A stretch of DNA of 64,000 bases. Source: Octopus sinensis. Lineage: Eukaryota. The position numbers and the translations under genes were made by a program. Below are positions 3,200 to 60,505 of the stretch, piece by piece. The DNA is taken from assembly GCF_006345805.1 (NCBI RefSeq), contig NC_042997.1:190588001-190652000 (forward strand), in the 5' to 3' direction. The notes under the pieces are model-generated. The model was not told where the DNA came from. It saw only the letters and a program-made list of their open reading frames with translations, and made no database searches. Positions within the stretch are counted from its first letter, which is position 1. Every line of letters starts with the position of its first letter.

Positions 3200-3430
3200 T
3201 ATTTCTTTACTACCCACAAGGAGCTAAACACAGAGGGGACAAACAAGGACAGACAAACGGATTAAGTCGATTGCATTGACCCCAGTGCGTTACTGGTACT
3301 TAATTTATCGACCCTGAAATGATGAAAGGCAAAATCGACCTCGGCGGAATTTGAGCTCAGAACGTAACGGCAGACGAAATACGGCTACGCATTTTGCCCG
3401 GCGTGCTAACGTTTCTGCCAGCTCGCCGCC
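3200..3430 (-). mobile_element. SINE family 3 (GGCGGCGAGCTGGCAGAAACG head) with LINE-like tail
   Basis: Full head with B box GAGCTCAAATTCC; tail ...GTGGGTAGTAAAGAAATA followed by TGTAT. Confidence 0.9.
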
Positions 3431-13698: not shown

Positions 13699-13929
13699 GG
13701 CGGCGAGCTGGCAGACACGTTAGCACGCCAGGCGAAATGCGTAGTCGTATTTCGTCTGCCGTTACGTTCTGAGTTCAAATTCCGCCGAGGTCGACTTTGC
13801 CTTTCATCCTTTCGGGGTCGATAAATTAAGTACAAGTTACGCACTTGGGTCGATATAATCGACTTAATCCGTTTGTCTATCCTTGTTTGTCCTCTCTGTG
13901 TTTAGCCCCTTGTGGGTAGTAAAGAAATA
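13699..13929 (+). mobile_element. SINE family 3, full-length, 18 bp TSD
   Basis: TSD AGGTATGAGAAGTTTAAA at 13681-13698 and 13929-13946. Confidence 0.92.
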
Positions 13930-17337: not shown

Positions 17338-17545
17338 ATTATAAGTACTCTAAGAAACATACAAAATCCGTTAGATTCACTTCAAAATTTAAATTTAATT
17401 TGTCAAAATATTTTCGTCGCTTTGAGACCGCGACCTGTTCACTGACAAAATTCCGTGCTGTCAGTGAACAGGTCGCAGTCTCAAAGCGACGAAAATATTT
17501 TGACAAATTAAATTTAAATGTTGGAGTGAATCGAACGGTTGTGTT
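17338..17545. repeat. Long foldback palindrome (Penelope-like terminal repeat remnant)
   Basis: Left arm 17338-17447, 11 nt loop, right arm from 17459; the distal part of the right arm resumes at 19281-19304 after the inserted LINE derivative. Confidence 0.85.
17459..17505 (+). ncRNA. Minimal type I hammerhead ribozyme, G3:C8 core variant
   Basis: tgtca GTGAACA g gtcgc-agtctcaaa-gcgac GAAA atattt tgaca: stem I 5 bp, stem II 5 bp, palindromic stem III; mirror copy at 17401-17447 (-). Confidence 0.6.
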
Positions 17546-17553
17546 TTTTTACG

Positions 17554-19280
17554 CTCTGTAAAATTCGGTTAAAAAAGAACAAAAAGCGTTGTTGTTGTTC
17601 TGGAAATTTTGAACGGCGTTGATGCGGGTTCGCGTTTCGCTGGTTCTGCACGTTACACTTTTTCTGTTTTGGCGGCCGTTTTCGGTCTGTCAGACAGAAG
17701 GAAATGGACTATGAGTCTCTAACAGACTTGTCCACGACTGATGAGGAACTGGAACAGGCAGTGATAATGAAGCTGATGGGAGATAAGGCTGGAGTCTTCG
17801 AGCCTTTATCAGACTTGTCTACGTCTGAGAAGGAGCTAGAAATGGCAGCGAGGAAATTGGACGAGAAGCTGGGTTATACCTATGCCGGTGTAACCAAGAA
17901 GGCGGAAGAGAAAGGGGTCGACTTGGCCAAGTTGCCAAGTTACCAGAAATACATGAAAAAGGATAGCGGTGAGGTGGAATTGGCACCGACACCCAAGAGA
18001 AAAGAATGGTATGATAAAAGGACCATTATTTACAGGGTGTTCGCAAACGAAAGGAAGAAAATAGAAGTTGTAAACATGGAGTGGATAGAGGAGGCCCTGA
18101 GAAGAACGGAGGAGGAAATTAATTTTCTGACTCGAGGATCCAAGTATGGTACCGTAGTGGTACATTTTAAAAGTGAGAATGCAGCGAGGAAGATGGCGGC
18201 GAAGGCGGTGAAGTCAGAAAAGGTAACACTTTTGCCTATGTATTTGAATAGAAGGATTACACGAGTGAGGGTGGAGGGAGTGCCACCAAACGTGGAGGGA
18301 GAGTGGATTGTGGCGGCTGTGATCAGCGGCCATGAGGAGGAAGTGGATATTCTCCATGCCTCGGTTAAGACAGAGGGCTGGAGAGGCGTAACAGTGGAGC
18401 TGAACGTACAGGCAGAGAACGAGGTACTGGTGGACCTGGCGGAAAGCATTAGATTGGGAGACGTGATCATGAGAGTGTGGGTGGAGGGCAGAGCTCCACG
18501 TTGTTACAAGTGTGGCCTGAGGGGGTCACATAAGAGCCTTCTGCCCTCCCCCAGGGAAAGAAATGGATTCCGAACCACAGAGAGAGAAGCAGAAACCAGG
18601 GGAGAAGGAGACAGTAGAAGAAGAAGAGAATACACAGAAATGGAAGGAAGCTGGAAATAAGAGGAAGAGAAGAATACGAGGAAAAGAAAATAACATGGAA
18701 CACCAATCCACCCCAAAACCACCCACACCCTCTGAGTCCCACCCTATCCCTGCAGACAGTGAACCCACCCGCTCCCCCCCCCCCAACAAGAAAACAAAAG
18801 AAAAAAAATAATACAGACAGACAAGAGATTGAAATCGAACCCAGGCCGTACATTTGTACTATGACTGAACAGAAAGAAGTTAAAAGGCTAATGGAAGAGT
18901 ATAAATGGTATGAAGTTGGTGAGACTAGGTATGCTGTGATTGAAAAGAAGAACATAGATGAATTTATGGTGAGGTGTGAAAGGGAGAATTGGGAGGTGAA
19001 AGATATAAGAATGAGCGATGAATTCGTGGAAAATATGGATGAGTATTTCGGAGTAAGAATGGATATGGAATTTATTCGTATTGGGAAAGAACATTCAAGT
19101 GACGGTGAAAACCAAAGGACAGGTAAGTGATGCTAACGGATGGGGCCTTTAGCATCGCTTTCATATTATCATTTTTTCATGTAACAATTCATCCTTCATA
19201 AATTTAATTATAATGTTCTATGTCCCCATGTCTTGTAATGTCCCCCTCTTCGTTCGCCCCTTGTGGGTAATAAAGAAATA
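17554..19280 (+). mobile_element. ORF1-only (HAL1-like) non-autonomous derivative of an L1/Tx1-clade LINE
   Basis: ORF1 homologous to 54829-55701; no ORF2; ends CCCCTTGTGGGTAATAAAGAAATA like the LINE and SINE 3 tails; degenerate TSD (gtgtttttttacg / gtgtttcttaaacg). Confidence 0.8.
17704..19130 (+). pseudogene. L1/Tx1 ORF1 (gag-like, CCHC zinc knuckle) with frameshifts
   Basis: RGSKYGTVVVHF...VEGRAPRCYKCGLRG(H) aligns with RGKKFGTVEVRF...VEGRKPRCFLCGQLGH of the full element; frameshifts in the G run near 18520 and the C run near 18780. Confidence 0.85.
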
Positions 19281-19980
19281 GTGTGTTTCTTAAACGGCTT
19301 ATAAACACCTTCCACGCTGCAATTGTTTTTGTTCTCTGATCAGGTCACTTGCTATGCAAGTACATCTCCGTAAAATAGAAGTACTCTTCTGTAGGTTAAT
19401 TCGTCGTTCCTCATCGATATATAATTCATAAGAAGTTTGTATGGGATTTGTAATCTCAGTTTTTACATAGTAGCTTTAATACATTGTGAATGACATTTGT
19501 AATGAAAATCCTTGGTTTCGTAAACTTGATATTTAAGCCGTTACAAAATGTTTAAGATTTCTCAATGCATAGTTTTCTCGATACGTTGTACATTTGTTAC
19601 TTAGGGTTTGTTCTATATTTTTACGTGAACTAATTGTATATTATTATATATCATGCATATAATATAGTATAATATAATACAATATAATATAATATATAAT
19701 ATGTTATAAAATTTAATATTATATAAAATCATGATATTATATATCATGTATATCATGTATATTATTTATATTCTTTGCCGAACTATTCATTATGAAATAG
19801 AAGCTAATGAGCTATTGACAGTATTTACGCTTTTTCTTGTCATTTTTCTTGTTATTTGAACACTGCTCCAACTGGTTGTGGAGTTTTGCGTTGTCTGTTT
19901 ACATTAGTGAATATACTCTTCAATTGCACATTTTGTACTATTTTATTTTTACTTTGGTGCAGAGACCGTTGGTTGTTCCT

Positions 19981-20600
19981 TATTTCTTTATTGCCCACAA
20001 GGGGCTAAACATAGACGGGACAGACAAAGGGATTAAGTCGATTATATCGACCCCAGTGCGCAACTGGTACTTAATTTATCGACCCCGAAAGGATGAAAGG
20101 CAAAGTTGACCTCGGCGGAATTTGAACTCAGAACGTAACGGCAGACGAAATAACGCTAAGCATTTTTCCCGGCGGGCTAACGTTTCTTATTTCTTTATTG
20201 CCCACAAGGGGCTAAACATAGAGGGGACAAACAAGGACAGACAAAGGGATTAAGTCGATTACATCGCCCCCAGTGCGTAACTGGTACTTAATTTATCGAC
20301 CCTCGAAAGGATGAAAGGCAAAGTTGACCTTGGTGGAATTTGAACTCAGAACGTAACGGCAGATGAAATACCTATTTCTTTACTACCCACAAAGAGCTAC
20401 ACACAGAGAGGACAAACAAGGCCAGACAAACGGATTAAGTCGATTATATCGACCTCAGTGCGTAACTGGTACTTAATTTATCGACCCCAAAAGGATGAAA
20501 GGCAAAGTCGACCTCGGCGAAATTTGAACTCAGAACGTAACGGAAGACGAAATACCGCTAAGCATTTCGCCCGGCGTGCTAACGTTTCTGCCAGCTCGCC
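19981..20600 (-). mobile_element. Three-unit tandem array of SINE family 3
   Basis: Units 19981-20187, 20188-20372 and 20373-20600; junctions tail|AGAAACGTTAGC and tail|GGTATTTC. Confidence 0.9.
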
Positions 20601-20954
20601 GGTTGTTTCTAGGTTTCATCTGCTTCTATATTTCATACGATTCATGTTTTCCTAGGCCCTGGCTGGCAGCTGGTATCTCTACCATCTGATCATCATTCTA
20701 GCTATCCCCAACATTTTCTCTTCGTTCTGTCATCTCATATCGAGATATCAGTTACCTAGTGTACACTCTCATTGAAAAGACAAAACAGCCAAGTGATGTT
20801 ATGAGTGAATGCACTGCTATTTCAGGTAGATTAAATACAGTGGGTTCCTTTCAAAGTAAATTCTACGCACTCGCACGCGCGCGTACGCTCGCACATACCG
20901 ACACACCGACACACACACACATACATACACAAACGTGCGCGCACACATACAGTC

Positions 20955-21542: not shown

Positions 21543-21940
21543 GAAGTGGCTGCGTGATAAGTAGCTTTCTTACGAACCACATAGTTCCAGGTTCAGTCCT
21601 ACTGCGTGGCACCTTGGGCAAGTGTCTTCTACTATAGCCTCGGGCCGACCAAAGCCTTGTGAGTGGATTTGGTAGACGGAAACTGAAAGAAGCCCATCGT
21701 ATATATGTATATATATCTATGTATGTATGTATGTGTGTGTATATGTTTGTGTGTCTGTGCCCCAACATCACTCGACAACCAATGCTGGTGTGTTTACGTT
21801 CCCGTAACTTAGCGGTTCGGCAAAAGAGACGGATAGAATAAGTACTAGGCTTACAAAGAATTTGCTCGACTAAAGACGGTGCTCCAGCATGACCACAGTC
21901 ACATGACTGAAACAAGTAAAAGAGTAAAAGTGTAAAAGAG
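21543..21940 (+). mobile_element. SINE family 1
   Basis: Head, internal (TA/TG) tract and GAAACAAGTAAAAGAG tail. Confidence 0.88.
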
Positions 21941-22477
21941 TAGCAATCATATCAAGACTTCTCCCAGATTTCCTTATATATATTCTGTGCTTTCTTAATT
22001 GAACACGGCTTTCTTAAAATTTTATATTTCCTAATAGTCTGCATTTTGTTGCATTTATTGTTTTTTTTTTAATTTCACATGTCATTTTTCGAATGAACGG
22101 GTTTCTTTCGGATTCAGTTGGACTTATTTATAATATTTTATTCCTTTTTGTTTTAGTTGTTATAATAATTTAATAAACACCACAGGAATAACAAATATAA
22201 GCTTACAAGGCGAGATCCTACCTTAAGGAAATAAGATGTGAGTCACTGACTTCGAAAAGATATTTATATGTTAGTAGTGATTCATTTTGAACACATAACA
22301 TACAAACTGCTTGCGTTGATAATTTAGTTGACCTCAGCTTGTAGGCTATGAGTTCAAATTCCATGGAAGGATTTCGCTGAATTTTGTCTAAAAAACACTT
22401 TATTCCATATTATGACACTGACGGAAATAGGAACACGTCTCAAATACAACACAATCTTAGTGTTAATAATAGTGACT

Positions 22478-23310
22478 AAAGGAAGCCAGCGAGCTCAGTC
22501 GTTAGCGCCCCAGACAAAATGCTTAACGGCATTTCGCTCGTCTTTACGTTCTGAGTTCAAAGTCCACCGAGGTCGATTTTTGCCTTTCGTCCTTCTAACG
22601 TCGATGAAAATAAGTACCAGATGAGCACTGAGGTCGATGTAACTGACTGCTCCCCTCCCACCAAATTGCTGGCTTTGCTCCAAAATTTGAAATCAATAAT
22701 TCTAGTGACTAAGGCAGTGAGCTGGCAGAAATGCTTAGTGATATTTCGTCTGCCGCTACGTTCTGAGTTCAAATTCCGCCGAGGTCGGCTTTGCCTTTCA
22801 TCCTTTCGGGGTCGATTAAATAAGTACCAGTTACGCACTGGGGTCGATGTAATCGACTTAATCCGTTTGTCCGTCCTTGTTTGTCCTCTCTGTGTTTAGC
22901 CCCTTGAAGGTAGTAAAGAAATAGGTATTTCGTCTGCCGTTACGTTCTAAGTTCAGATTCCGCCGAGGTCGACTTTGCTTTCATCCTTTCGGGGTCGATA
23001 AATTAAGTACCAGTTACGCCCTAGGGTCGATGTAATCGACTTAATCCTTGTGTCTGTCCTTGTTTGTCCTCTCTATGTTTAGCCCCTTCTGAACAATAAA
23101 GAAATAAGAATTGTTAGCACGCTAGACAAAATTTCCGCATTTCTTCCGTCTTCACGTTCTGGGTTCAAATTATGCCGAGGTTGACTTTGCCTTTTCATCC
23201 TTCCGAAGTCGATAAGATAGGTGGCAGTCGAGTACTTGGGTCAATGTAAATGACTGGCCTCATCCCCCAAAATTGCTAGCCTTGTACCAAAATTTGAAAC
23301 CAATGATTCT
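22478..23310 (+). mobile_element. Nested SINE 3 cluster: two old copies with the native tail plus a young LINE-tailed dimer inside the second
   Basis: Old tails CCCCTCCC..AAATTGCTGGC..AAATTTGAAA; young units end at 22923 and 23106; the TAGTGACT flank recurs three times. Confidence 0.8.
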
Positions 23311-23749
23311 AGTGACTGGTGAAAGTAAAACCACCCGTTCAAACCGAGTAAAATGTAATTGAGAACATAGAGACATTCTTTTGTACTTTTACAAGAATTA
23401 AAAGTGCAAAAGTCAGTTGATATCATAGGTTGACAACATTCCATAATCTTACCGAATCAGTAATATTTTCAGTGTGGTATTCTCTTCCCCTAAATATTCT
23501 AAACATGGAAATTAACCAGCTCTCGTAAAGTTGGTTACATTTCCTAAGTACCAGAACCGATATTACAGCACAGCTGCAGATCAAAGTTTTGCTGCGTTCG
23601 CAACATATTTATTTAGAACTTTATTCCAGGTGTTGGTTGCTTTCTAAGCTTTTCTTGTACCTTTAGCCCCTTGACAATGCTACAGAAAATCAATCAGATA
23701 TATTACAGAGCGAAGCCAAAAAATACTATATCTCTTTTAGTTCGTACAA

Positions 23750-24790: not shown

Positions 24791-26155
24791 GTGTCGGAGG
24801 TCGTTGTGAGTTCTATCCCCCACAACCTAGGACTAGAGGCAATCCAATTCTGGCTAGAGAATCACGCCAACGAACTACCACACCGCATCAAAAAAGAATT
24901 TGTGATAGAAGGGGTCAAATTCATCCTGGAAAATAACTTCTTCGCCTTCAATGACAACTTCTACCGACAAAAATCGGGGACTGCGATGGGTACACGAATG
25001 GCCCCCTCCTTTGCCAACCTAGTCATAGGATACCTAGAGATCAGTCTGTATCGTAAGGTTCTAGAAAGATATGGCAGCCCTTTCTCCATCTACATAGAAA
25101 ACAACTGGAAGAGATATCTAGATGACTGTTTCATCCTTTGGCATAAAAATATAGAAAAACTCATAGAATTCCAGAAAATTTTAAACGGACTGGACGTAAA
25201 CATCCATTTCACGATGGAATATAGCCAACAACACTCCCCTTCCTCGATATCCTCATTAAGAAAGCTAATAATATAATAGAAACAGACATATACTATAAGC
25301 CTACAGACTCTAAGCAATATCTTCCATTCAATTCATGCCACCCCAGACACACCAGGATGAATATCCCCTTCAATCTAGCAAAAGGATATGCACTATAGTC
25401 TCTAACGCAAACACCAGAGACACACGACTACAAGAACTAAAAGATACCCTAATCACCAGGAACTATCCACCTTCACTTATTGACAAGTGCATTCAACGTG
25501 CCCTTCAACTTAACATCAAGGAACTGAGACATCCCAAATCAAAGAAAAACTTACAACCAAAAGCCTTACCATACATCTCCACACACAACCCCCTCAATAA
25601 CGAAGCCTTCGACACCATCCTCCACAACATACCCCTCCTAAAAAAAGACCACAGAATGAACACAATCCTCCAAACACACACGATCATAAAAAGCAAAAGA
25701 CAGCCTAGATCCATGAAAAGTCTCCTTACACAAGCCCGAATTCACTCCTCAACACAGAAGCCGACAGTAAAAAAATGTGGAAGACCCAATTGCGGGATAT
25801 GCGACTATCTAATTGAGGGATCAGAGTTCTCCTTCAAGCAGGGACAACGGTTTACAGTGAAAAGCAACTTCACATGTGCTTCGGAACTAATATACTCACT
25901 AACCTGCTCCGGGTGTCAAGAGCAGTACATAGGCCAAACAAAAAATGGTTTGCGTAAACGAATGGCCCTGCACAGATCCCAGATAAAAATTCCCCAAAAC
26001 AGAAAAATAGCTTTTAGCCAACACATAGATACTTGCGCCAACAAAAAGACACCAAACTTCAGAATTTTCCCCCTCTACCAATTTAGGGACGATACAACCT
26101 CGAGAAACGAATAAGTAAAGAAAATCTCTTTATTACAAAATACAAGCCACTTCTA
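24791..26155 (+). pseudogene. Penelope RT / GIY-YIG endonuclease ORF, frameshifted
   Basis: GTAMGTRMAPSFANL and WKRYLDDCF (RT); CGRPNCGIC and LIYSLTCSGCQEQYIGQT (GIY-YIG); frameshifts near 25240, 25320 and 26100. Confidence 0.92.
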
Positions 26156-29464: not shown

Positions 29465-29484
29465 ACTCGCGCGCGCGTGCGTGC

Positions 29485-29576
<92 letters not shown>

Positions 29577-29577
29577 G

Positions 29578-29637
<60 letters not shown>

Positions 29638-29650
29638 TCCGTCCGTCCGT
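29465..29650. repeat. (TG)n followed by (CGTG)n microsatellite
   Basis: Direct inspection. Confidence 0.95.
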
Positions 29651-29744
29651 CCACCTGTTGTTTCTCTTTGTGATCTGTGAATCAAATACATGGAACAGAA
29701 CATATTGGTGTCTAATCATGGTGTGATATAAGGTAGAAAAAAAA

Positions 29745-30142
29745 GGCGGCGAACTAGCAGAAACGTTAGCGCGAAATGTTTAGCGGTATTTCGTCTGCCG
29801 TTACGTTCTGAGTTCAAATTCCACCGAGGTCGACTTTGCCTTTCATCCTTTCGGGGTCGATAAATTAAGTACCAGTTACGCACTGGGATCGATGTATTCG
29901 ACTTAATCCTTTTGTTTGTCCTCTCTGTGTTTATCCCCTTGTGGGTAGTGAAGAAATAGGTATTTCGTCCGTCCTTATGTTCTGAGTTCAAACTCCGCCG
30001 AGGTCAACTTTGCCTTTCATCTTTTCGGGGTCGATTAAATAAAGTACCAGTTTCGCAATGTGGTCGATGTAATCGACTTGATCCCTTTGTCTGTCCTTGT
30101 TTGTCCCCTCTATGTTTAGCCCCTTGTGGGCAGTAAAGAAAT
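29745..30142 (+). mobile_element. SINE family 3 dimer with 15 bp TSD
   Basis: TSD ATATAAGGTAGAAAA at 29726-29740 and 30143-30157; internal junction tail|GGTATTTC at 29959. Confidence 0.9.
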
Positions 30143-31010
30143 ATATAAGGTAGAAAACATAAGATATATAAAGGGAGAGAAACGGAAGTTTTAAAAATAT
30201 TGGTGAGGAAGAGTTGGATTTAAACAGTGCAGAAATGATATAAAAATACAAGAAATATAAGAAGCGTAAAATTGGTCGGAAAGACTACAGAAACCCAACC
30301 AGAATAATAATAAAAGAATAAATGAATGAAATGGATTTATAACGAGTTAATGTTCATGGGAAGAGATATAATGAGGAAATGAAAACAGGTATAAAGGAGA
30401 TTAAATGTAAAAGAAACGAGATCAATGTAGAGAAAGAGAGATAAAGAGAATATGTAAAGTGGAGAGAAAGTGGGGGTGATATAAAAAGAGAAGGCTGGAA
30501 ATGGAAAGTTGATATGATAAAAGGGTTAAAACAAAGATGAAGATATTTTTTTTTCTGTAATGTGTGAAAAAAACCAGTGTATGAAATTCAAAAAGAGTAT
30601 AAAGATGAATTCTGTATGGCATTTGTTATCATAGGAAAAAAAAAAGTTTTGTTTAATAAATATATAAACAGAAATTGATCATATGCCAAAAGAAAACTTT
30701 CTTTGTGGTGTATATATTTTCCTGTATACATCAAATGATATATGATCTTATTAATTTGTGAAATAAAACTATCCTATCGCTCTAGCCGTATAGCTGCCTA
30801 CCTGATTAAATATACACGCGCGCGCGCACACACACATGCAAACATATATATAAATATTATCGACCATATATACTTAACGTATATGCTTTATTTATTTTTG
30901 AATGGACAGGTTTCAATCCAAATCACTACAATTGTTTCTGTACATTAGTACGAGCTGGAAATTGCTGGGTGTTTTACATTTTATACACAATTTTAAAATA
31001 TGATCCAACA

Positions 31011-31190
31011 AGGAGTGGCTGTGTGGCGGTAAGTAGCTCGCTTACCAAACACATGGTTCCGGGTTCAGTCCCATTGCGTGGCACCTTGGGCATGTGTCTT
31101 CTACTATAGCCTCGGGGCGATCAAAGCCTTGTGAGTGAATTTGGTAGACGAAAACTGAAAGAAACCCGTCGTATGTATGCATATATATGT
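31011..31190 (+). mobile_element. SINE family 1, 5' half
   Basis: Head AGGAGTGGCTGTGTGGCGGTAAG; truncated by the adjacent array. Confidence 0.8.
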
Positions 31191-31194
31191 GTGT

Positions 31195-31879
31195 GAGGTC
31201 GACTTTGCCTTTCATCCATTCAGGATCGATAAATTAAGTACGCACTGGGGTCGATATAATCGACTTAATCCGTTTGTCTGTCCTTGTTTTTCTCCTCTGT
31301 GTTTAGCCCCTTGTGGGTAGAAAAAGAAACAGGTATTTCGTCTGCCGCTACGTTCTGAGTTCAAATTCCGCCGAGGTCAACTTTGCTTTTCATCCTTTCG
31401 GGGTCGATTAAATAAGTACCAGTTACGCACTGAGTCGATATAATCTACTTAATCCGATTGTCTGTCCTTGTTTGTCCCCTCTGTGTTTAGCCCTTTGTGG
31501 GTAGTAAAGAAATAGGTATTTTGTCTGCCGTTACGTTCTGAGTTCAAATTCCGCCTAGGTCGACTTTGCTTTCATTCTTTCGGAGTCGATTAAATAAGTA
31601 CCAGTTACGCACTGGTGTCAATATAATCGACTTAATCCGTTTGTCTGTCCTTGTTTGTCCCCTGTGTTTAGCCCCTTGTGGGTAGTAAAGAAATAGGTAT
31701 TTCGTCTGCCGCTACGTTCTGAGTTCAAATTCCGCCGAGGTCGACTTTGCCTTTCATCCTTTCGGGGTCGATAAATTAAGTACCAGTTACGCACTGGTGT
31801 CAATGTAATCGGCTTAATTCCTTTGTCTGTCCTTGTTTGCCCCCTCTATGTTTAGCCCCTTGTGGGCAATAATGAAATA
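31195..31879 (+). mobile_element. Four-unit head-to-tail array of SINE family 3 (~183 bp period)
   Basis: GGTATT junctions at 31332, 31515 and 31696; last tail followed by AGAAACG at 31880. Confidence 0.92.
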
Positions 31880-32681
31880 AGAAACGTAACCTCTAGTTCT
31901 AGATCATTTTGTTTCGACCAAAGTGTTTTGGACGAATTCAGTATATTTCTATCAAATCTTTCTAAGCCTCTGTGTATGCGTGTGCGCGCCCGCGTGTTTG
32001 TGTGTGTGCGTGCGTATGTCTAATGTTATAAGGAGCACAAAATTGTATCTGACGCTGTCTTTTCACTTTAACATTTCTCAAACTACACACATGTTCTCAT
32101 TCGTTTCCTTCCCTGAATATTTTCCTGTCATTCTGCTTCCAGTTCTTCCTTATACATGTTATTTCGTCATTTTTTTTTTCCTTTTCATTTCATATTATGA
32201 CATATAATCCGTCTGTTGTTCACCGTCCACGTCTTCTCTTTGTATTTTGTTCACTTTCTTTTCACTAACATAAGTATCCTGCACATTCGGGTTCGGTCAT
32301 ATGGCTTCTACATCCGTTGATATTTCAATGCTCTCTTATCTCCTATGTTCTTCATTCATCCTTCGCTTGTATCGTCTCATTCTTTCTAGTATTTCATGTC
32401 TTCATTTCGATCTGAATTTGAAATAATCTTTCCTTTTTTTTTTTGCAAATGACAAATGAGTTTTTACAGCATATGTTTTCCAGTAATGCAAGAGCGTAAC
32501 TGATGAAACAAGCTAACAAGAGGCTGGAATACATTCCCTGCTGTCTTGCTGTGTGTTGTTCCATGCATGAATGTAAGAATGAATTAATCTAGAAAACGAT
32601 GATTCACACTCATACACACTTTTACAAACACCTAGATTGTTCACTATACTCTGCAAAGAACTTAACAAGTGGAGTGGAGTG

Positions 32682-35050: not shown

Positions 35051-35460
35051 ATGGTAAGTCATATATGATGTTCCCTTTTCCCCATCACTTGAGGAGCAAG
35101 TTCTGATATCATTATATCGCATGAATACATTTTATATAGGATTACAATCACTAAAACTTAAAGCAAAAGTATTATCACACGTTTTTTATCATGTATTTTA
35201 CTTGTTCAGTCATTAAACTTCAGCCATGCTGCAGTAATCCCTTTAAGGGATTAATCGAACAAATGGCCCCAGTTTTATGTCTGATACTTACTCTATTGCT
35301 TTCTCTGACGAAGAGTAGGTTATAGGGAGATAACCAAAATCTATCCACCATTAAAAACTCGTTGTAGTGAGTGAACCATTATCCATTTGACGTTATTTGT
35401 CTTTATACACACACACATATACACACGACAGGCTTCCACGGAATTTCCATCTACCATATC

Positions 35461-35693
35461 TGTTTCTTTATTTCCTACAAGGAGCTAAACATAGAGGGGA
35501 CAAACAAGGACAGACAAAGGGATTAAGTCGATTACATCGACCCCAGTGCGTAACTGGTACTTAATTTATCGACGTTGGAAGGAGGAAAGGCAAAGTCGAC
35601 CTCGGCGGAATTTGAACTCAGAACGTAACGGCAGATGAAATACGGCTACGCATTTCGCCCGGCATCCTAACGGTTCTGCCAGCTCACCGCCTT
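35461..35693 (-). mobile_element. SINE family 3 with 17 bp TSD
   Basis: TSD ATTTCCATCTACCATAT at 35443-35459 and 35694-35710. Confidence 0.9.
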
Positions 35694-42544: not shown

Positions 42545-43348
42545 GTTATACTGAAATGGAGGAAAGAATCGTAATGGATAATCCCTTCCCAGTCCCACCA
42601 TACACTTCAACATCGTTTTACGCGGATGAAGATCTTGTTTCACGCGTGGTATCGCTTGTTTATGCTGCTTCATATTGATATACAGGCACCACTTTTCTCG
42701 CCAATTACGATTCGGTAAAGAAATCGTTACTTGTGTCTATAAGTTGAGCGGTGACGAGCAAGCAAACCAGCGGAGAGTGTGGTTCGTTGATTTTTGTTGT
42801 TGTCGCTTAAAGCATGCGGAACCCATGCTCCATACTGCTGAACATTTCCCATTGAGTGAAGATACTTCTCTATAGCAGTGTGGGAGCATTCCATTTTCTC
42901 TGCCAATTCCCTTGTCGTTTGACGAGAATTTTCGTGCAAAAGTTGGTTTAATCGTTCTTCATCAAACTCAACTGGACGGCCAGAACGAGGTGCGTTTTTG
43001 AGATCAAAATTTCCATTTTTGAACTTGGCATACCAACCACGAGCGGTTCTTTCAGCTATGGCATCCTCTCTATACACAGCACAAATGTCGCGAGCAGCTT
43101 TTGCGGCCTTAAAACCTTGATTAAAAGCAAAAAGGAGGTTTCGAAAATGCTCGTTTTTTTTTTAACTTGACATTTCATTTTAATGATCTGAAAATAAACA
43201 AAAATTAACTAAAATTAAATAGAAAAAAAGGATTAAAAAATGATTCAAAAATAGAATTCTCGAAAAAAAATTGATTGCAAAATTTAAAAAACGCAATAAA
43301 TTCCAAATTTTAAAAAAAAATGGTGGTAACTTAGTTGCCAACCGAATA
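42545..43348 (-). mobile_element. Mariner transposon, 3'-truncated
   Basis: 116 aa ORF 42727-43077 with PRSGRP and WVPHAL motifs; downstream RVKQDLHPRKTML...WEGIIHY; TIR-like TATTCGGTTGGCAACTAAGT at 43329-43348. Confidence 0.9.
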
Positions 43349-45244: not shown

Positions 45245-45322
45245 ACCGTCTATATCCTAACCCACCAAAAATATAAACTTTGTTGGTCCATAAGAAAGTA
45301 GTATTTTCTTTAGAGGAATACC

Positions 45323-45737
45323 TATTTCTTTACTACCCACAAGGGGCTAAACACAGAGGGGACAAACAAGGACAGGCAAACGGATTAAGTCGATTACATC
45401 GACTCCAGTGCGTAACTGGTACTTAATTTATCAACCCCGAGAGGATGAAAGGCAAAGTCGACCTCGGCGGAATTTGAACTCAGAACGTAGCGACAGGCGA
45501 AATACCTATTTCTTTATTACCCACAAGGGGCTAAACATAGAAGGGACAAAACGGACGGACATAGGTATTAAGTCGGTTACATCGACCCCCAGTGCGTAAC
45601 TGGTACTTAATTTATCGACCCCGAAAGGATGAAAAGCAAAGTCGACCTTGGCGGAGTTTGAACTCAGAACGCAGCGGCAGACGAAATACTGCTAAGCATT
45701 TCGCCCGGCGTGCTAACGTTTTTGCCAGCTCGCCGCC
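45323..45737 (-). mobile_element. SINE family 3 dimer with 18 bp TSD
   Basis: TSD TTTCTTTAGAGGAATACC at 45305-45322 and 45738-45755 (minus strand begins GGTAT); internal tail|GGTATTTC junction at 45506. Confidence 0.92.
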
Positions 45738-46869
45738 TTTCTTTAGAGGAATACCATAAAATAAAAACTTAAACCGTAGTAGAGGCAACCCCATGACTTG
45801 GTTTCGATTCTTAGTTGAAGCTACTTCACTTACTCTGTTAATACCCTTCTTAAAACATTAACGTTTCAACAACAGCGATTTCGCCTTCTCTATAAATCTA
45901 GAACCTTATGCCCTTCATAAAATTAAATCAATATTTACTGTGAATTTATGTAGCCATAGTGCTAAAGTTGAACACATTATGAAAACTAGTTTTATCAATG
46001 TTGAAATACATAAAAACAAAACTAAACAGATATTTCATGTTAAAATAATCTAGTCTTTCAGGATTTTCAATTGCTCCATGATGCAAATTTTCCATTAGAA
46101 AAAAGTAATTGCAGTCCTTGTAAAACATTACTTAAATGTTGAGTTTGAACTTAAAAAAAAAAATACTAATAATAAATCAATGCTAAAACGCGCATGCTCA
46201 CAAAATTGCAAGTCATTTTTCATTTCCGAATCACATGAAGTTCAATGCTTGGAAATGACTACAAATTTATTTTTACTGATTGGTCTTACGCCAAAAATGT
46301 TTAGTGAAACAAAACTACCTATAAATAACAAAAACAAATCAACAGTACATTGATAAATCAATAACTTCAATATTAAATTTCCAACATTTGCAGTTCTAGT
46401 TTGTTGTCTAGCCAATAAAGGAAATTCACCAAGAAAAGAGAAAATATTCACTAAGATTAAAAAAAAAACAAAGAGAATAGATAGTAAAAACATGATGATG
46501 AAGAATGCTCAAAACCAATCTTTCAATGTTTACATTTAACGCTTCCTTACAACTCCATTTAAAACGCATTTCAAAGTATTTTTATAATTATTTTTATCTA
46601 CAGTCAAAAACTAACTGTAACCTTTTAGTGACGGTATTTTACGTTTATTCGAGCGGAATATTATTTTTTTTTATTTATTGATGCTTAATATTACTCCAGG
46701 ATGAAGTTGTTTTACTTCTGTCGTTTCGCTAATGTCTATGGCAAAAGAATAAATGCCGCAAAATCTCATTTACCTTCTTAGATAAACATGAAGCTTACTG
46801 CCAATATAAACTATCCACGTTTACGTTGCTCATCAAACAGTATATACGATATGTACCATATCGCTTTAA

Positions 46870-47272
46870 TCTCTTTTACTTGTTTCAGTCATTTGTACTG
46901 TGGCCATGCTGGAGCACCACCGCCTTTAGTCGAGCAAATCGACCCCAGGACTTATTCTTTGGAAGCTTAGTACTCATTCTATCGGTCTTTTTTGCCGAAC
47001 CGCTAAGTTATGAGGACGTAAACACACCAATATCGGTTGTCAAGCGATGTTGGGGGAACAAACACAGACACACAAACATATACACACACACACATGCATA
47101 TATATAGACATATATACGACGGGCTTCTTTCAGTTTCCGTCTACCCAATCCACTCACAAGGCTTTGGTCGGCCCGAGGCTATAGTAGGAGACACTTGGCC
47201 AAAGTACCACGCAGTGGGACTGAAACCGGACCATGTGGTTGGTAAGCAAGCTACTTACCACACAGCCACTCC
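46870..47272 (-). mobile_element. SINE family 1
   Basis: Full homology. Confidence 0.9.
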
Positions 47273-52061: not shown

Positions 52062-52296
52062 GGCGGCGAGCTGGCAGAAACGATAGCAAAACCGCAAAGC
52101 GAAATGCTTAGCGGTATTTCGTCTGCAGTTACGTTCCGAGTTCAAATCCTCCGAGGTTGACTTTGCCTTTCATCCTTTCGGGGTCGATAAATTAAGTACC
52201 AGTTACGCACTGGGGTCGATGTAATCGACTTAATCCCTTTGTCTGTCCTTGTTTGTCCCATCTATGTTTAGTCCCTTGTGGCCAATAAGGAAATAA
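52062..52296 (+). mobile_element. SINE family 3 inserted in the head of a family 1 SINE
   Basis: Family 1 head fragment at 52041-52061 and its continuation at 52297-52685; CTTGCTTAC / CTTTCTTAC duplicated. Confidence 0.85.
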
Positions 52297-53930: not shown

Positions 53931-54828
53931 ACATGCATAATATATTTTCCAAGATAGGGAAATTTTGGCATCTAATATTAGTACGGGCACCTTACAAACA
54001 AATCAAATCTACATGAAGGAAATGTAGAGATTTAGTCTCAACAAGGTCTCGGTTAAGTCAAGAATTCTTAAACAATTTATTTGGTGGCTCCTAATGGGTT
54101 TAGAACAGCCAAACTTTTCATAGACAGTTTTATTTGTTTAATCTCTTATGAAATATAGCTTTATGAAAGAGAAAAACGTGATTACTAAAGATATATAACA
54201 ATTAATTATGGGTTCCCCTTCGGTTCCTCAAGAGTAAAAAGGCTGGGAAACGCCTCTGTAAAGATGTTGTCAAATTACCATCTAGATATAACCTTTTGTG
54301 GTTCAATAAATTATCGTTTGAGGTAGCGAGCTGGCAGAAACGTTAGCACGGCGGGCGAAATGCGTAGCCGTATTTCGTCTGCCGCACATGTGTTCGTGGT
54401 AAGAATTGCTGTTTCTTGGTGTTAATATTGTTAATAACTGTTGTTTCTTGTTAAACTGTTGAATAACTTAACTGTTGGAGTTTTCAATTGAAAACACTTA
54501 GTGCTTGTGGTAGCACGCGTTGTTCATTCCCCCTTTGGGGGGAAGAATGTCGTCTAGCATGGAGCCTACCGTTGGAGCAGAAATACTTGTTTCTCCTGTT
54601 GAGAGGAGGAAATACATGTCCGGCGAGGAGCCAACTACAGACAAGGAAATAGGGGTTCCCCCGCTACAAGAAGGAATCGCAGAGAGGATAATATATTTGA
54701 TATTTTTGGAGATGTGTCTGAGAGCTCGTCAGAACTTTCACCAGAAGAGTTTCCGACTTTGCCAGAGAACAAAGGCATTGTGTCGAAGAGAATAATTGAT
54801 GTGCCTAGCATCCAGATAGAACCAAAAA

Positions 54829-55701
54829 ATGGAAAAAAAAAGTTTTGCGTTGGCTGCTGGGGGTGGAACCCGGATACTGTCGACGAATAAAAGCGACTTT
54901 ATGAAATACAGCCAAATGATGAAAATAACTGACAACGGTGTGAAAATTGAACCTCCGCAAAAGTTATTACAAGAAGAAAAGCAAAAAACAATAATTTTCA
55001 AAACATATTGTCTACAAAAAAGAAAAATTGAAAGAATGTCAGAAGAGAAAATAGAAAAGTGCTTAAAGCCAATATGGGGCGACGTAGTATATCTGAGAAG
55101 AGGAAAAAAATTCGGAACGGTGGAAGTAAGGTTCACCAATAAAGAAATAGCACACAAGAACTCAGTTGAAACGCTGAAAACGAACGACGTGGAGTTAATC
55201 CCCTATTATATGGGGATGAGGACGTCGCGAATAAAAATTACAAGGGTCCCGCCAGAGGTCGAACCTATGTGGTTGTTGGCGGCAGTCCTAATCAAAGAGG
55301 TAGAAAAAATTACTCTCCTCCAGGCTACCGCTACGGAAAACCCACGCTGGGATGGTCAAACAATTAATCTTCTCATTCAAGCGGACCCTAAAATAATTCA
55401 AGCAATTCCTGAGACAATTGAGGTAGGGGAGGAGAACCTCGTGGTGTTTGTTGAGGGCCGAAAACCTCGATGTTTTTTATGTGGTCAATTAGGCCACATT
55501 CGAAGGAACTGCAAGGAAAATGAAGAAGAGGAGGAAGAGGAGAAAAAAGACAAAGAGGAAGAAGATAAAGAAGAAACAGATGAGAAAAAAACAACAAACA
55601 AAAGAAAAATACAACCAGCAACCCAGCCGAGAGCGGCGACTACTACAGAACAACGACCAAAAAAGACTGCCAGAAGAGAAAAAGAAGAAAAAGGCATATA
55701 G
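54829..55701 (+). CDS. LINE ORF1 (RNA-binding, CCHC knuckle CFLCGQLGHIRRNC); C-terminus continues out of frame to 56072
   Basis: 290 aa ORF, zinc knuckle, acidic/basic tail; homologous to 17704. Confidence 0.8.
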   Translation: MEKKSFALAAGGGTRILSTNKSDFMKYSQMMKITDNGVKIEPPQKLLQEEKQKTIIFKTYCLQKRKIERMSEEKIEKCLKPIWGDVVYLRRGKKFGTVEVRFTNKEIAHKNSVETLKTNDVELIPYYMGMRTSRIKITRVPPEVEPMWLLAAVLIKEVEKITLLQATATENPRWDGQTINLLIQADPKIIQAIPETIEVGEENLVVFVEGRKPRCFLCGQLGHIRRNCKENEEEEEEEKKDKEEEDKEETDEKKTTNKRKIQPATQPRAATTTEQRPKKTARREKEEKGI

Positions 55702-56087
55702 CCGTATACACTAAAGATACTGAGCTCATGAGAGACATTCAACTGATAAAGACTGTAAAAAAAATAGATAACCTTTCAGAGGAATTTATCAATTACGACA
55801 TATATGAAGTCTCAAATAAGACTTATAGAATTCTACAAAATAAGTACAGAAAGACTGTATCTTCATTGAGATTAGAATTTAACAAGTCGATATTTCATGG
55901 ATTACCAGCCCCGATCCCGCGAGAAAAGGAAAAGGTGGAGATTCCCCCTCCACCTGATAATTCTGTGTCGGTGGTGAGACGGGATTTTGACAAATCTATT
56001 TCCCAAGACCGTCCACCTCCGACCCTGGATCAAAAAAAAGGTGGAGGGTCCCCCTCCACCGGACAATCCTAATTAAACAGGTAAGTA

Positions 56088-59000
56088 ATGGCTATTCACA
56101 TTGGTTGTTTAAATGTTCATGGCCTGTTGTCAAGCTGGAAGCAAGGACGCTTTCTAAATGACATCAGGTCGAGAAATTTGGATGTAATTGTTGCAACGGA
56201 AACCCGGGTGAAGGGGCCAAGAGATCTGCTCCCCCTCCTGAATGGCTACGAGAAATACGTTTCTCCGAGTCGGGCGGGAGGTGGGGGTGGGGTGTTGGTC
56301 CTACTAAAAAGAAACCGGGTAGCCAAGAAAAAGTTGGTTTCTTCTGACCCAGAAGGCAGGCTGGTCGTTCTCGACTTGACATTCAGTTGTGGCAAGACAA
56401 TCAGGCTGGTCGCTATTTACGCACCAAACATTATTGGCCCGCAAACTGAATATTTTCGTGGCCTAGGAAAGTTCCTAGCCACGTCGCATTCACTAGTAGT
56501 GTTAGGAGACTCTAATACAATATGTGCAGCACACACAGATTGTGTTGGCTCAAACTCGAACATGAACAGAAAATGTAACCCAGGCTTTCGGGATCTGCTA
56601 AGTCAATTACAGCTAGCAGATCCATATAGGTTGGAGCACCCGAACACTCCACAGTGGACGTGGTCAAATAGTGACGGGTCTACCAGAACATATCTAGATA
56701 GGATTTTAATTAGAGAAAAAGATAAGTCCATAGTTGAGTGTCCACAGTTTTTTCTAGTCAGCTACAGTGACCACAAGATGGTTACCTGTAAACTGACGGT
56801 AGATAAGTTGCATAGACAGGGATCTGGCTACTGGAAACTCAATACGTCCCTTTTGGCGATTGAGGAGTACAGAAAGCGGATCAAGATGTTAATACAGAGG
56901 GCATTAACAGGTACCATCATTAATAACAAATGGTGGTACGCCCTAAAAAGAGCCATCAAATATGAGTCTATTAGGTTTAGCATAAGTTTAGCTAAGAAGG
57001 GACGTAAAATAGGAGATGGTCTAGTTAAGGATCTAGAAGAAGCCTGGAGGACTGGTAATACAGACCAAGCGAGGGTGAAAAGACTGGAGTTAAACCAGCA
57101 TATTGAAGCCCACCACATGGGAAGTATTACCAGAGCTAAGTTACGTGCAATGGGAAGTGAAGGAATCAAAGCCGCTGGATGGGCCCGAGTGGTGGAAGCT
57201 CGGGAAGGAAATAGTTTCTCTATTCGGTCTTTGACGAATCAAAATGGTGTCTTGGTAAACGAACCCGAGAAAATGTGTGAGGTCTTTCGGGAGTACTTCG
57301 CCCAGCTGTTCGGGGGTGACGGCGGTCCTGGTGGTGGGAGAGCCCTCGAGGACTTTCTTACCGGGCTGCCGTGCCTCTCGGGGTCGGATGCGGAGTCTTG
57401 CGAAGGGCCAATCACACCTGAGGAGGTGATGGAGGCTTTGGCCGATTGTAAAGCGGGTAAGTCACCGGGACTTGATGGTCTTCCGTACGAGCTGTATAAA
57501 TGTATGCCAGACTTGTCCGGGCAACTACTGACTGACGTGTACGCGAACTGGAAACAGAATGGGTTTATCCCCAGATCTGTGCGCCGGGGAGTAGTGACGT
57601 TGGTCAGAAAGGACCCGGACAAGGGGGACGTTCTAGAGAATTTCAGGCCCATCACTCTGTTAAACGCAGAAGTGAAGATTTTGGCCAAGGTTCTAGCAAA
57701 AAGGTTGGCGCGTGTCGCGAATGGTACAGTCGGGGAGGCACAGACATGTGCCATCCCAGGCAGAACCATTCAGGATACCCTCCATCTTATTCGCTATACC
57801 ATAGAGAGGATTGGTAATAAATCTGGCAAAGTTGGGGCATTGGTGCATTTGGACCAGTCTAAAGCTTTTGATAGGGTTGACCATCGATACCTAGCGACTG
57901 TACTTGCGCGGTTTGGCCTGGGCCTTGGCTTCCTCAGGTGGTTTATCGCTTTGTACCACAACATTGACTCGATAGTTCGGGTGAACGGTTTCCTTTCGAA
58001 GCCGTTCTGCATCAGACGCTCGGTTCGTCAAGGATGTCCGCTTTCACCACTTTTGTATGTGATGGCTCTCGAGCCATTACTGCAAAGGTTGAGTGGCATC
58101 CCGAGAGAACCAGGACTAGAGGAGTTTGTTACGGCTTTCGCGGATGATATCACTATCAGTGTAACCACAGTGGCACGCCTACGTGAAGTAGGTAAGACTA
58201 TTGAGGCTTACGAGGAGGTAGCAGGAGCAAAGACTAACCGGGAAAAGTCGGTCGGCTTGCAGCTCGGCACCTGGGTTGGCAAGTCGATGCCTTCAGACAG
58301 TGTTGTTAGGTGCTGGACGGAGGGACCGGTTAAGTTGCTGGGAGTCTGGTTTGAACCAGGCCTCCAGATAGAGAAGAACTGGACGGAGGTATTGAGCAGG
58401 GTGGCTGCAGTAGTCAAGACCTGGTCTTGGCGGTGGCTATCCCTGAAAGGGAGGGCGGAGGTGGCCAATGTGTTTATCGCATCGGTCATTACCTACCGCC
58501 TGACCGTCGTGCCCTGTCCGGATTCGTGGTTGATCAGGTTGGAGAGACAGCTCTTTCGCTTTTTGTGGAAGGGCAGGTCGCCACTTGTGAAACGCTCTGT
58601 CTGCTGTCAAAAGCCTTTAAATGGAGGTTTAGGGATGCCTTGGTTAATGATGCGCAGACATGCGTTGAGGTTGAGGCACCTCTGGATTCTCCTGGATAGT
58701 GAACGGGTGTGGTCTCCGCTGGCCAGACAAATGTTCCCTGAGTTCAAGAGTTTTTGCGAACAGGAAGCCTGGTGTTCTCGTAGAACGAGGTCGAGTGACT
58801 GGCATAAAGAGTGCCGTAAGGCCCTCTTGCTATTCCGGCGCTCGGGCAACGCCAGCGGTGGGGGTTCCACACGGATTTTATATAGTGGGTTGGTAGAGTC
58901 TGAATGCGACGATGGCCTGGGGTCGACTCTAGGTCTCGGATTTATTCAACTGGACAGCTTGTTTCATCGTACATTCGGGTTGAGAACGTTGGACAACTTC

Positions 59001-59387: not shown

Positions 59388-60505
59388 AAAGGAAACTGTG
59401 CCTGGAGAAGAGGTGTCTGTCAGAGTGTACGTTCCAAAAGAGATGGAAGTATGTTGCACGAGTGTTGTGCGTGCAAGGAACCATGTGTATAGACGAGGAA
59501 AAAAAAAGGAAAAATAAAAAGGTATCAGCGGTAGATCGGGGTTTGTGGGATCGGAGCGTAACTTGATCATCGCTTCATTTGTATTATTTTTGTACTGTGT
59601 ATTCCATTCGATTTTTATGTATTATATTTTATTTTTGATGTCACATTTATATAAAATCATATCGATTCACTGATCCCATCAGTTGTACTGTCCATATCTA
59701 TGTTTGGCCCCCGGTGGGCAATAAAGAAATTCGTATTTCGTCTGTCTCTACGTTCTGAGTTCAAATTACGCCGAGGTCGACTTTGCCTTTCATCCTTTCG
59801 GGATCGATAAATTAAATATCTGTTGCGTACTGGGGTCGATCTAATCGACTGGCTCCCTCCCCAAAAATTTCAGGTCTTGTGCCTAGTGTAGAAAAGAATG
59901 AATTATCGTTTGAGGGGTCCTTTAGACAGGCTTTAAAATTACGTTCTACCTTCTTAAAAAACACGGAACTACATATAATATAGTCGTAATGGCCATGTCT
60001 GGAATACTTTCGATCATAAATTTCCCAGAGCAGGATTTTCCTTACCAAGAGTTTCACAGCAATAATAAATCTAATGTATGTAGCAAGTCTGGTCTGGTTC
60101 CAATTCTATTAAGTGCAGCCCATTCGTCGTTAACTGTGTGGTTTGCCGTTACAGTGTAAGAAAATATATTATTATAAAAGTGCTTTACCTACAAACAAAG
60201 AAATAAACTTTCCAATTGAAGACCTGGTGAAATGTGATGATTAAACATTCATAAGCTTCACAAAGTTATTAGTGCCAGTATTATTGAAGTATATCAAAGT
60301 GTTCTAATACTACTTCGAAAACTTTGAAGAATAATCCTTCCAATTATTTATTATTTTGAAAGCAAATCTGATGTGTAGTTACGATGATCGCTTTGCAACC
60401 AGGCGGTCACAAGTTCAAACTTAATGCAGGTCTTTATTATTTTATTTTTTTCATCTATAACCAAAGAACAGCCAATGCCATTTGGTAAAGTATGTAGATT
60501 GAAGT

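Follow-up and report, generated by a model that had tools for sequence, protein, structure and literature searches.

Head-to-tail arrays of an octopus SINE join at two fixed positions in the SINE head and may reflect insertion into earlier copies

A 64,000-nucleotide window of the Octopus sinensis genome (contig NC_042997.1, positions 190,588,001 to 190,652,000, forward strand; assembly GCF_006345805.1) contains five head-to-tail arrays of a short interspersed element (SINE), here called family 3, whose units are joined at two fixed positions within the SINE head. An apparently intact long interspersed element (LINE) with a similar 3' end is inserted into the head of a related SINE at one of these same positions. 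On balance we think the arrays probably result from site-preferring integration into earlier copies, with the 5' side of each insertion resolved by homology with the old head and one scarless 183-bp unit added per hit. We are less sure of the broader proposition, which may well be correct, that the SINE's own head carries the preferred site of the mobilizing LINE, so that the family keeps inserting into itself and provides scarless tandem growth and a recombination-independent seeding of satellite-like arrays.

All counts and tests refer to this one window, a sample too small for family-level rates to be derived from it. Tandem arrays were located with Tandem Repeats Finder (TRF), and family-3 copies by BLAST of one unit against the window. 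Head positions are numbered within the full element of ~231 bp, the unit being its last 183 bp; the arrays are named A20, A22, A29, A31 and A45, with units u1, u2 and so on in 5' to 3' order, and a slash marks a junction. The window is AT-rich (32-48% GC) and dense in microsatellites and retroelements.

Structure of family 3 and its arrays

Nine family-3 monomers accompany the five arrays. The length of the full element was deduced from the monomer flanks; its first 48 nt are a 5' part of the head (GGCGGCGAGCTGGCAGAAACGTTAGCACGCCGGGCGAAATGCTTAGCG), and the rest is the 183-bp unit (GTATTTCG...GGGTAGTAAAGAAATA), which ends in ...TGTGGGTAGTAAAGAAATA, has no poly(A), and in its consensus form contains no TTTT run of the kind that terminates RNA polymerase III transcription. 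The head contains a B-box-like GAGTTCAAATTCC and an acceptor-like stem (GGCGG...CCGCC pairing), and positions 31-60 form a predicted 13-bp hairpin in an anticodon-loop-like location, with the loop ending just 5' of GGTATTTC. ARAGORN made no tRNA call on the head, and it has no Rfam tRNA match at the gathering threshold or at E<=10. Target-site duplications (TSDs) of 14-18 bp and variable sequence were verified around five monomers, identifying family 3 as a LINE-dependent SINE; the best explanation of its organization is a non-autonomous retrotransposon with a tRNA-like head, a body, and a tail of ~48 nt borrowed from a LINE of the L1/Tx1 group.

13699..13929 (+): reference full-length monomer, nearest to the consensus, TSD GGTATGAGAAGTTTAAA (17/17)
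End positions 3200(-), 12674(-), 21182(+), 35463(-), 36346(+), 52295(+), 61139(-), 63493(+): other monomers

The copies fall into two subfamilies, A (..ATA..CCG..CTGTG..GGGTAGT) and B (..GTA..CCC..CTATG..GGGCAAT), with monomers common in both. Their consensuses differ at five columns, all within the 3' 70 nt, and the head offers no diagnostic position by which a head could be linked to the last unit of its array. The arrays are as follows.

31195..31879 (+): A31, 3.75 units and no head; u1 31195-31331 (A), u2 31332-31514 (A), u3 31515-31695 (A), u4 31696-31879 (B)
31880..31891 (+): 3' flank of A31, AGAAACGTAACC, the first 8 nt identical to head positions 15-22 and the remainder unrelated
19981..20600 (-): A20; head, u1 (A), tail/GGTATTTC, u2 (B), tail/AGAAACGTTAGC, head positions 15-48, u3 (B)
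22713..23106 (+): A22; partial head, u1 (A), tail/GGTATTTC, u2 (B)
29745..30143 (+): A29; head, u1 (A), tail/GGTATTTC, u2 (B)
45323..45737 (-): A45; head, u1 (B-like), tail/GGTATTTC, u2 (A)
Unit order: A20 = A/B/(AGAA)B; A22 = A/B/(AGAA)X; A29 = A/B; A31 = A/A/A/B; A45 = B/A

An earlier note on this DNA had described an array of about 183-bp period, and TRF indeed reports 31195-31879 with a period of 182, 3.8 copies and 88% matches, together with dimers of 183/184 bp at 22742-23088 and 45317-45689. Three arrays are enclosed as a whole by one TSD: A45 by GGTATTCCTCTAAAGAAA (45738-45755 and 45305-45322, a perfect 18/18), A29 by TATAAGGTAGAAAA (29727-29740 and 30144-30157, 14/14), and A20 by AGAAACAACC and AGGAACAACC (20601-20610 and 19971-19980, 9/10). 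A22 sits within the head of a SINE of a second, related family (the X family, see below) at position 14/15; its own partial head reads GGCAGTGAGCTGGC AGAAA TGCTTAGTG, lacking positions 20-39, with AGAA microhomology. The first unit of A31 is 5'-truncated at SINE position ~89 and lies directly 3' of the microsatellite tail of an unrelated SINE (31019-31194), and no TSD was found around this array. About 100 bp upstream of A29 there is a (GCGT)45 microsatellite (29471-29650, 96% matches), a GC-rich tetranucleotide that is unusual in this AT-rich region.

Both subfamilies are present in 5/5 arrays, in agreement with the earlier note, which had units differing at diagnostic positions; the five A/B columns separate the units, and every array mixes the two types. 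Units are no closer to their array neighbors than to dispersed copies, the mean divergence being 10.4% within arrays and 10.5% between all copies. They are thus not homogenized, and the longest array has 3.75 units, as opposed to the long homogenized arrays expected of a SINE-derived satellite; the label 'satellite-like' is too strong for arrays of 2 to 3.75 units. Some units are nevertheless related by more than subfamily: the first units of A20, A22 and A29 share one A sub-variant (T at alignment column 150), u2 and u3 of A20 are mutual nearest relatives at 4.7%, and u2 and u3 of A31 are 6.7% apart. In addition, u3 (A) and u4 (B) of A31 (31515-31879) share the private change CACTGGTGTCAAT, which suggests local gene conversion or unequal exchange between these neighbors.

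Unit junctions recur at two positions in the head

All seven of the tail/GGTATTTC junctions that had been reported are present. The sequence after the tail is exactly GGTATTTC at 20372(-), 22924, 29959, 31332, 31696 and 45506(-), and is the variant GGTATTTT at 31515. The three reported tail/AGAA junctions are also where they were placed, with tail/AGAAACGT at 20187(-) and 31880 and tail/AGAATTGTTAGC at 23107, but the one at 31880 does not begin a nested unit. There the match to the head is limited to AGAAACGT (8 nt), and we read this flank as a genomic target site resembling the second head motif. At 23107 the downstream element belongs to the X family, a different SINE family that has its head in common with family 3.

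The junctions define two sites in the head, the GGTATTTC point at positions 48/49 and the AGAA point at 14/15. Four A/B, two A/A and one B/A junction, as well as one LINE/X junction, are found at the former, and B/B and B/X junctions at the latter. Among nested junctions (n=11) the orientation is that of the host element in 11/11, and this agreement, at two fixed head positions, cannot be chance. Junctions at the two sites account for 10 of ~24 SINE tail ends and 1 of 2 LINE-type 3' ends, a sample far too small for a statement about the family. A single ancestral junction shared by all of the dimers is refuted by the mixed compositions (A/B, A/A, B/A and B/B) and the two junction positions, supporting the view that the junctions formed repeatedly and independently.

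Two expectations of the earlier note did not materialize. It had predicted internal TSDs, yet neither an internal TSD nor a duplicated head occurs at any SINE-SINE junction in the window, where target and insert are homologous and a sandwiched TSD would be indistinguishable from the units themselves; a search for hidden TSDs, in the form of private variants common to the first 17 nt of adjacent units, found none that is informative. It had also predicted an age polarity, which is not detectable with these few copies, the distance to the respective subfamily consensus being 4.4-7.4% for inner A units and 2.9-7.1% for terminal B units.

Every tail/head junction (31508-31523, for example) forms a short palindrome, GAAATA-GG-TATTTC, the preferred target being the reverse complement of the tail end. 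Two simple accounts of the junctions can be set aside. Tail and head share AGAAA and GAAAT, and both copies are retained, which rejects simple microhomology-mediated deletion or recombination. Priming through pairing of the nicked strand with the RNA tail is rejected as well, since the nicked end (...GAAATACC) and the tail (...GAAAUA) do not differ in sense; pairing of this kind should yield antisense insertions, and none were seen in the window.

A LINE is inserted at the same point

One of the X-family SINEs is interrupted in its head by a LINE with the following organization.

54324..54384 (+): X-family SINE head, 5' part (positions ~3-63), ending in GTATTTCGTCTGCCG, the left TSD copy of the LINE
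54385-59732 (+): partner LINE, apparently intact; 5' untranslated region (UTR), open reading frame 1 (ORF1), small ORF, ORF2, 3' UTR
54829-55701 (+): LINE ORF1, with a CCHC knuckle (Pfam zf-CCHC)
55728-56072 (+): small ORF between ORF1 and ORF2, no Pfam match
56088-59387 (+): LINE ORF2, 1099 aa, intact; apurinic/apyrimidinic (APE) endonuclease (Exo_endo_phos), RVT_1 and zf-RVT (Pfam)
59733..59900 (+): remainder of the interrupted X-family SINE, starting with GTATTTCGTCTGTCT, the right TSD copy of the LINE (12/12 or 13/15), and running to its own tail

The TSD of the LINE, GTATTTCGTCTG(CCG/TCT), is 12-15 bp long, corresponds to SINE positions 49-63, and is present on both sides; immediately past the end of the LINE tail at 59732, the SINE continues from GTATTTCG.... 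The interrupted SINE is itself enclosed by a perfect 15-bp outer TSD, AATTATCGTTTGAGG (54309-54323 and 59901-59915). The insertion is a textbook nested event at the same nucleotide as the array junctions, and because the LINE is nested at the GTATTTCG point with its own TSD, the LINE machinery has integrated exactly where array units begin. The LINE may be using SINE heads as a 'safe harbour'.

The best match of ORF2 in PDB is human L1 ORF2p (E=1.6e-63). The ORF2 sequence itself is not on record, and the closest database proteins, which are unnamed, are no more than 40% identical to it. From its domains and the L1 ORF2p match, including reverse transcriptase (RT), the LINE appears to belong to the L1/Tx1 group, and it may be a member of the Tx1 clade. 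The last 34-48 nt of its 3' UTR (...CTATGTTTGGCCCCCGGTGGGCAATAAAGAAATT) are 85-91% identical to B-type SINE tails, and it is this match that identifies the LINE as the partner of the SINE.

A LINE-related element at ~17540-19280 contains an ORF1-like ORF (17704-18660) and a small ORF (18759-19130) and lacks ORF2; it may be a non-autonomous deletion derivative. It ends in the same tail, which provides one more independent tail/flank junction. Just upstream is an inverted repeat (17368-17538; 80 nt, 95% complementary, 11 nt between the arms), which could be a foldback, a MITE-like (miniature inverted-repeat transposable element) sequence, or part of the 5' end of the ORF1-only element.

19155..19280 (+): 3' UTR and tail of the LINE-related element; tail TGTGGGTAATAAAGAAATA at 19262-19280, flank GTGTGTTTC

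Insertion sites outside the arrays resemble the head motifs

Outside the arrays, 7 of the 14 independent 3' flanks that follow a tail match GGTATTTC or AGAAACGT at >=5/8 positions with an offset of 0, against a background of 6.9% (P=1.7e-5), and 6/14 read NGTA, for which the background is 1.6% (P=4e-8). Examples of motif-like flanks are GGTATTCC (A45), GGTATGAG (13747), TGTATTTT (3200), AGTATTTT (21004), AGAAACAA (A20) and AGAAACGT (A31). At A45 and 13747 the GGTAT flanks are located inside perfect TSDs, showing that the motif belonged to the empty site. These data support the conclusion that off-target insertion sites resemble the two head motifs.

The X family

The X family has its head and part of its body in common with family 3, and has a different tail. 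Two X copies lie in tandem where A22 is inserted, with the TSD TAGTGACT(AA) present three times (22470-22479, 22703-22712 and 23310-23317), around X1 (22480-22702) and around X2 with its family-3 insert. This tandem with its threefold TSD (TAGTGACTAA) indicates repeated insertion into one target site by a different partner of the X family's own, and the few X-family TSDs (TAGTGACTAA, AATTATCG...) are without the target motif.

23107..23309 (+): remainder of X2, starting with AGAATTGTTAGC (head position 15)

Other repeats, and searches beyond the window

A second abundant SINE family starts with another tRNA-like head (…GGTTCCGGGTTCAGTCCC…) and ends in a tail of microsatellite-like (TATG/TG)n, and the family-3 monomers at 52062-52295 and 35463-35691 are nested in copies of it, each with a TSD. 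Weak similarity to RT (RVT_1, E=5.6e-4) and GIY-YIG (E=2.1e-3) domains in ORFs at 24791-26114 gives this region the look of a degraded Penelope-like element. An ORF at 42727-43077 (-) encodes a Mos1-type helix-turn-helix domain (HTH_48, E=7e-6) and looks like a fragment of a mariner-like transposase.

31019-31194; 52296 onward; ~35300-35460; ~1700-1800; ~21600-21800; ~47100-47250: copies of the second SINE family

No family-3 copy turned up when metagenome contigs were scanned for exact junction and core patterns, or in an exact-pattern scan of contigs from prokaryote genomes. A peptide translated from the SINE has one match outside the window, in a 543-bp metagenome contig (ENA ERZ23499442 scaffold_285125) that carries one family-3 monomer, 89% identical to the consensus, followed directly by the 3' part of an X-like SINE; this contig is presumably host DNA within the metagenome. 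No family-3 copy was found at the locus of the best ORF2 homologue. We found no description of arrays of this type in the literature on octopus or other cephalopod repeats.

How the arrays may form

Under the mechanism that we favor, nicking or priming would be biased to N/GTATTT(C) and /AGAAAC(GT). Both motifs occur in the SINE head (at 48/49 and 14/15), and new copies would therefore often land inside older ones in the same orientation. Target-primed reverse transcription from the nick would fix the 3' junction as tail/GGTATTTC or tail/AGAAACG. The new cDNA would share homology with the old head on the 5' side of the nick, over the staggered-cut region 48-64 and positions 1-47 (up to ~64 nt), and its 5' end could be joined by annealing to that homology and not through a conventional junction. 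The outcome would be exactly one more unit, of 183 bp, or of 217 bp at the AGAA point, and neither a visible internal TSD nor a duplicated head would result; the TSD of the old element would end up around the whole array, and further hits would lengthen it. A LINE cDNA, having no homology to the head, would leave an ordinary TSD, as seen. We infer the homology-mediated 5' step because the predicted internal TSDs are absent. A22, with a fixed 3' junction and an irregular 5' side, fits a site-specific nick followed by variable 5' repair. The preference could be seated in the endonuclease, or could come from annealing of the nicked DNA to read-through RNA containing downstream GGUAUUUC or AGAAAC, by analogy with R1/R2, the read-through source being a copy already within such a site. 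Once formed, some arrays may have been re-mobilized as multimers, and a mixture of both processes would be expected.

Targeted insertion into earlier copies, as the earlier note proposed, is thus borne out by the recurrent junctions, the LINE at the head site and the motif-like flanks, but not by the internal TSDs and the age polarity that it should have left. The latter absences weigh against the mechanism: no SINE-into-SINE event in the window has an internal TSD or a duplicated head, so that sequential insertion is not directly visible, and no age polarity is detected between inner and terminal units. A single outer TSD, taken alone, would favor mobilization of whole multimers. The order of subfamilies, A upstream and B last in 4/5 arrays, would also arise from an A-B master, or if synthesis began on B RNA and the enzyme then switched template, and A31, headless, truncated within a unit and without a TSD, is easier to reconcile with retrotransposition of a multimeric RNA than with insertion in steps. 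Two target motifs are, moreover, awkward for one endonuclease.

The strongest competitor is that multimers are mobilized whole, a dimeric (head-A-B) or longer source being transcribed through so that each array has one TSD and an inherited junction. The TSDs around the whole of A45, A29 and A20 (18/18, 14/14 and 9/10) agree with this, as do the prevalent unit order and the A sub-variant shared by the first units of A20, A22 and A29; read-through is feasible for a consensus unit without a T4 run, and the headless start of A31 within a unit is what 5' truncation would leave in a copy of a multimeric RNA. It is the simplest reading of A31 itself and of the recurrent A-then-B order. As the sole process, however, it would need many masters to supply the varied compositions (A/B, A/A, B/A, B/B, B/X and LINE/X) and two junction positions; it leaves unexplained both how a LINE with a TSD of its own came to this very point and why outer flanks are like the internal junction motifs, and the single outer TSD is predicted equally by nested insertion. 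We consider it unlikely to be the general explanation. A template switch of the RT within one integration is improbable. Here the enzyme would stall at ~48 or ~15 in the head, where a modified base of the tRNA-like fold or the apex of the 13-bp hairpin (31-60) might, for instance, halt it, and jump to the 3' end of another SINE RNA. Such switching would account for single outer TSDs with none inside, and for the occurrence between one pair of TSD copies of different subfamilies and, in A22 (B then X), even of different families. The GGTATTTC point lies directly 3' of the predicted hairpin loop, and a bias to terminal B units is expected if the LINE enzyme starts best on the B tail, which resembles its own. 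Yet a LINE/SINE junction with a 12-15-bp duplication of positions 49-63 is not a template-switch product, and motif-like genomic target sites are not predicted; the nascent cDNA end (...GAAATACC) has no complementarity to the 3' end of the acceptor RNA (...GAAAUA), the second abundant SINE family in the window forms no chimeras at these points, and no clear 5'-truncated monomers begin at position 48.

Duplication in situ by slippage or unequal crossing-over, with divergence and gene conversion afterwards, is very improbable, and as a general cause it is rejected by the mixing of A and B in the arrays. The private change shared by u3 and u4 of A31 and the proximity of u2 and u3 in A31 and in A20 are what it would produce, and some A/A or B/B steps could be local duplications or conversions. 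In 5 of the 7 GGTATTTC junctions, however, the joined units are of different subfamilies and differ concordantly at up to 5 diagnostic positions, and divergence after a local duplication cannot create concordant subfamily differences, which excludes this process for the A/B and B/A junctions. The mean divergence within arrays is not below that between copies, and neither the LINE at the same point nor the flank motifs would be explained.

If site-preferring insertion into earlier copies is correct, it provides a concrete mechanism, open to testing, for the first duplications that turn dispersed SINEs into tandem repeats, explains why unit boundaries start inside the head, and adds a 'self-targeting' case to the target-specific elements of the L1/Tx1 type. 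A SINE/LINE pair that prefers its own sequence suggests one route from dispersed repeats toward satellite-like DNA. SINEs make up ~12% of the DNA in cephalopod genomes (PMC13282606), and arrays of this kind in those genomes would inflate SINE family counts and confuse age estimates.

Comparison with known systems

LINEs of the Tx1 clade are target-specific, with other transposons among their targets, and their SINE partners share the target; tandem insertions sandwich a TSD, as for Tx1-Mar and SINEU in crocodilians (Kojima 2015, PMC4494074). In that work an element counts as target-specific if >20% of its copies are flanked by the same target sequence, SINEU-1 and SINEU-2 are on target in 13-23% of cases, and co-transcription with the target is mentioned (PMC4494074). 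As in the Tx1-Mar/SINEU system, an APE-bearing LINE of the L1/Tx1 group here appears to prefer a sequence inside another repeat, its dependent SINE shares the preference, and the preference is partial, as it is for SINEU-1 and SINEU-2. The octopus system differs in that the SINE carries the site in its own head, as does a sister family, and two sites are used. Sandwiched TSDs like those of the SINEU tandems are found at X1/X2 (TAGTGACTAA) and at the LINE (GTATTTCGTCTG duplicated), whereas the array units have neither a sandwiched TSD nor the first 48 nt.

SINE-derived satellites and tandem SINEs are known from squamates (sSat) and jerboas (Dip/B1 multimers) (Vassetzky et al. 2023, PMC10702118). 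The squamate satellites, of unresolved origin, have units of ~180 nt in which part of the head is combined with the body and the LINE-derived region; such arrays have been ascribed to unequal recombination or to insertions that hit one locus by chance, and are able to become long and homogeneous (PMC10702118). The octopus arrays have comparable ~180-nt units, which run from the 3' part of the head, where box B lies, through the body to the LINE-derived region, and resemble short, poorly homogenized 'seeds' of such satellites. In contrast to sSat, they have 2 to 3.75 units with subfamilies mixed, and the LINE at the same nucleotide indicates a retrotransposition-based cause.

Dimeric and composite SINEs, including Alu, Twin, and plant homo- and heterodimers, amplify as units, with one composition and one junction set by the master. 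The octopus arrays share with them head-to-tail modules within one TSD and downstream modules that lack part of the head, but unlike those families they vary in composition, and monomers of both subfamilies are common. RT template switching generates chimeras such as U6-L1 and related chimeric retrogenes, in which, likewise, the junction coincides exactly with the 3' end of the upstream RNA and there is a single TSD; the LINE junction described here differs from them in carrying a target duplication. In R1 and R2 elements, read-through RNA anneals to the target and guides precise priming, and guidance of this type could be at work in the octopus element. Target-specific LINE/SINE pairs and SINE-derived satellites were thus already known, and what is new here is a target in the SINE's own head together with a scarless join.

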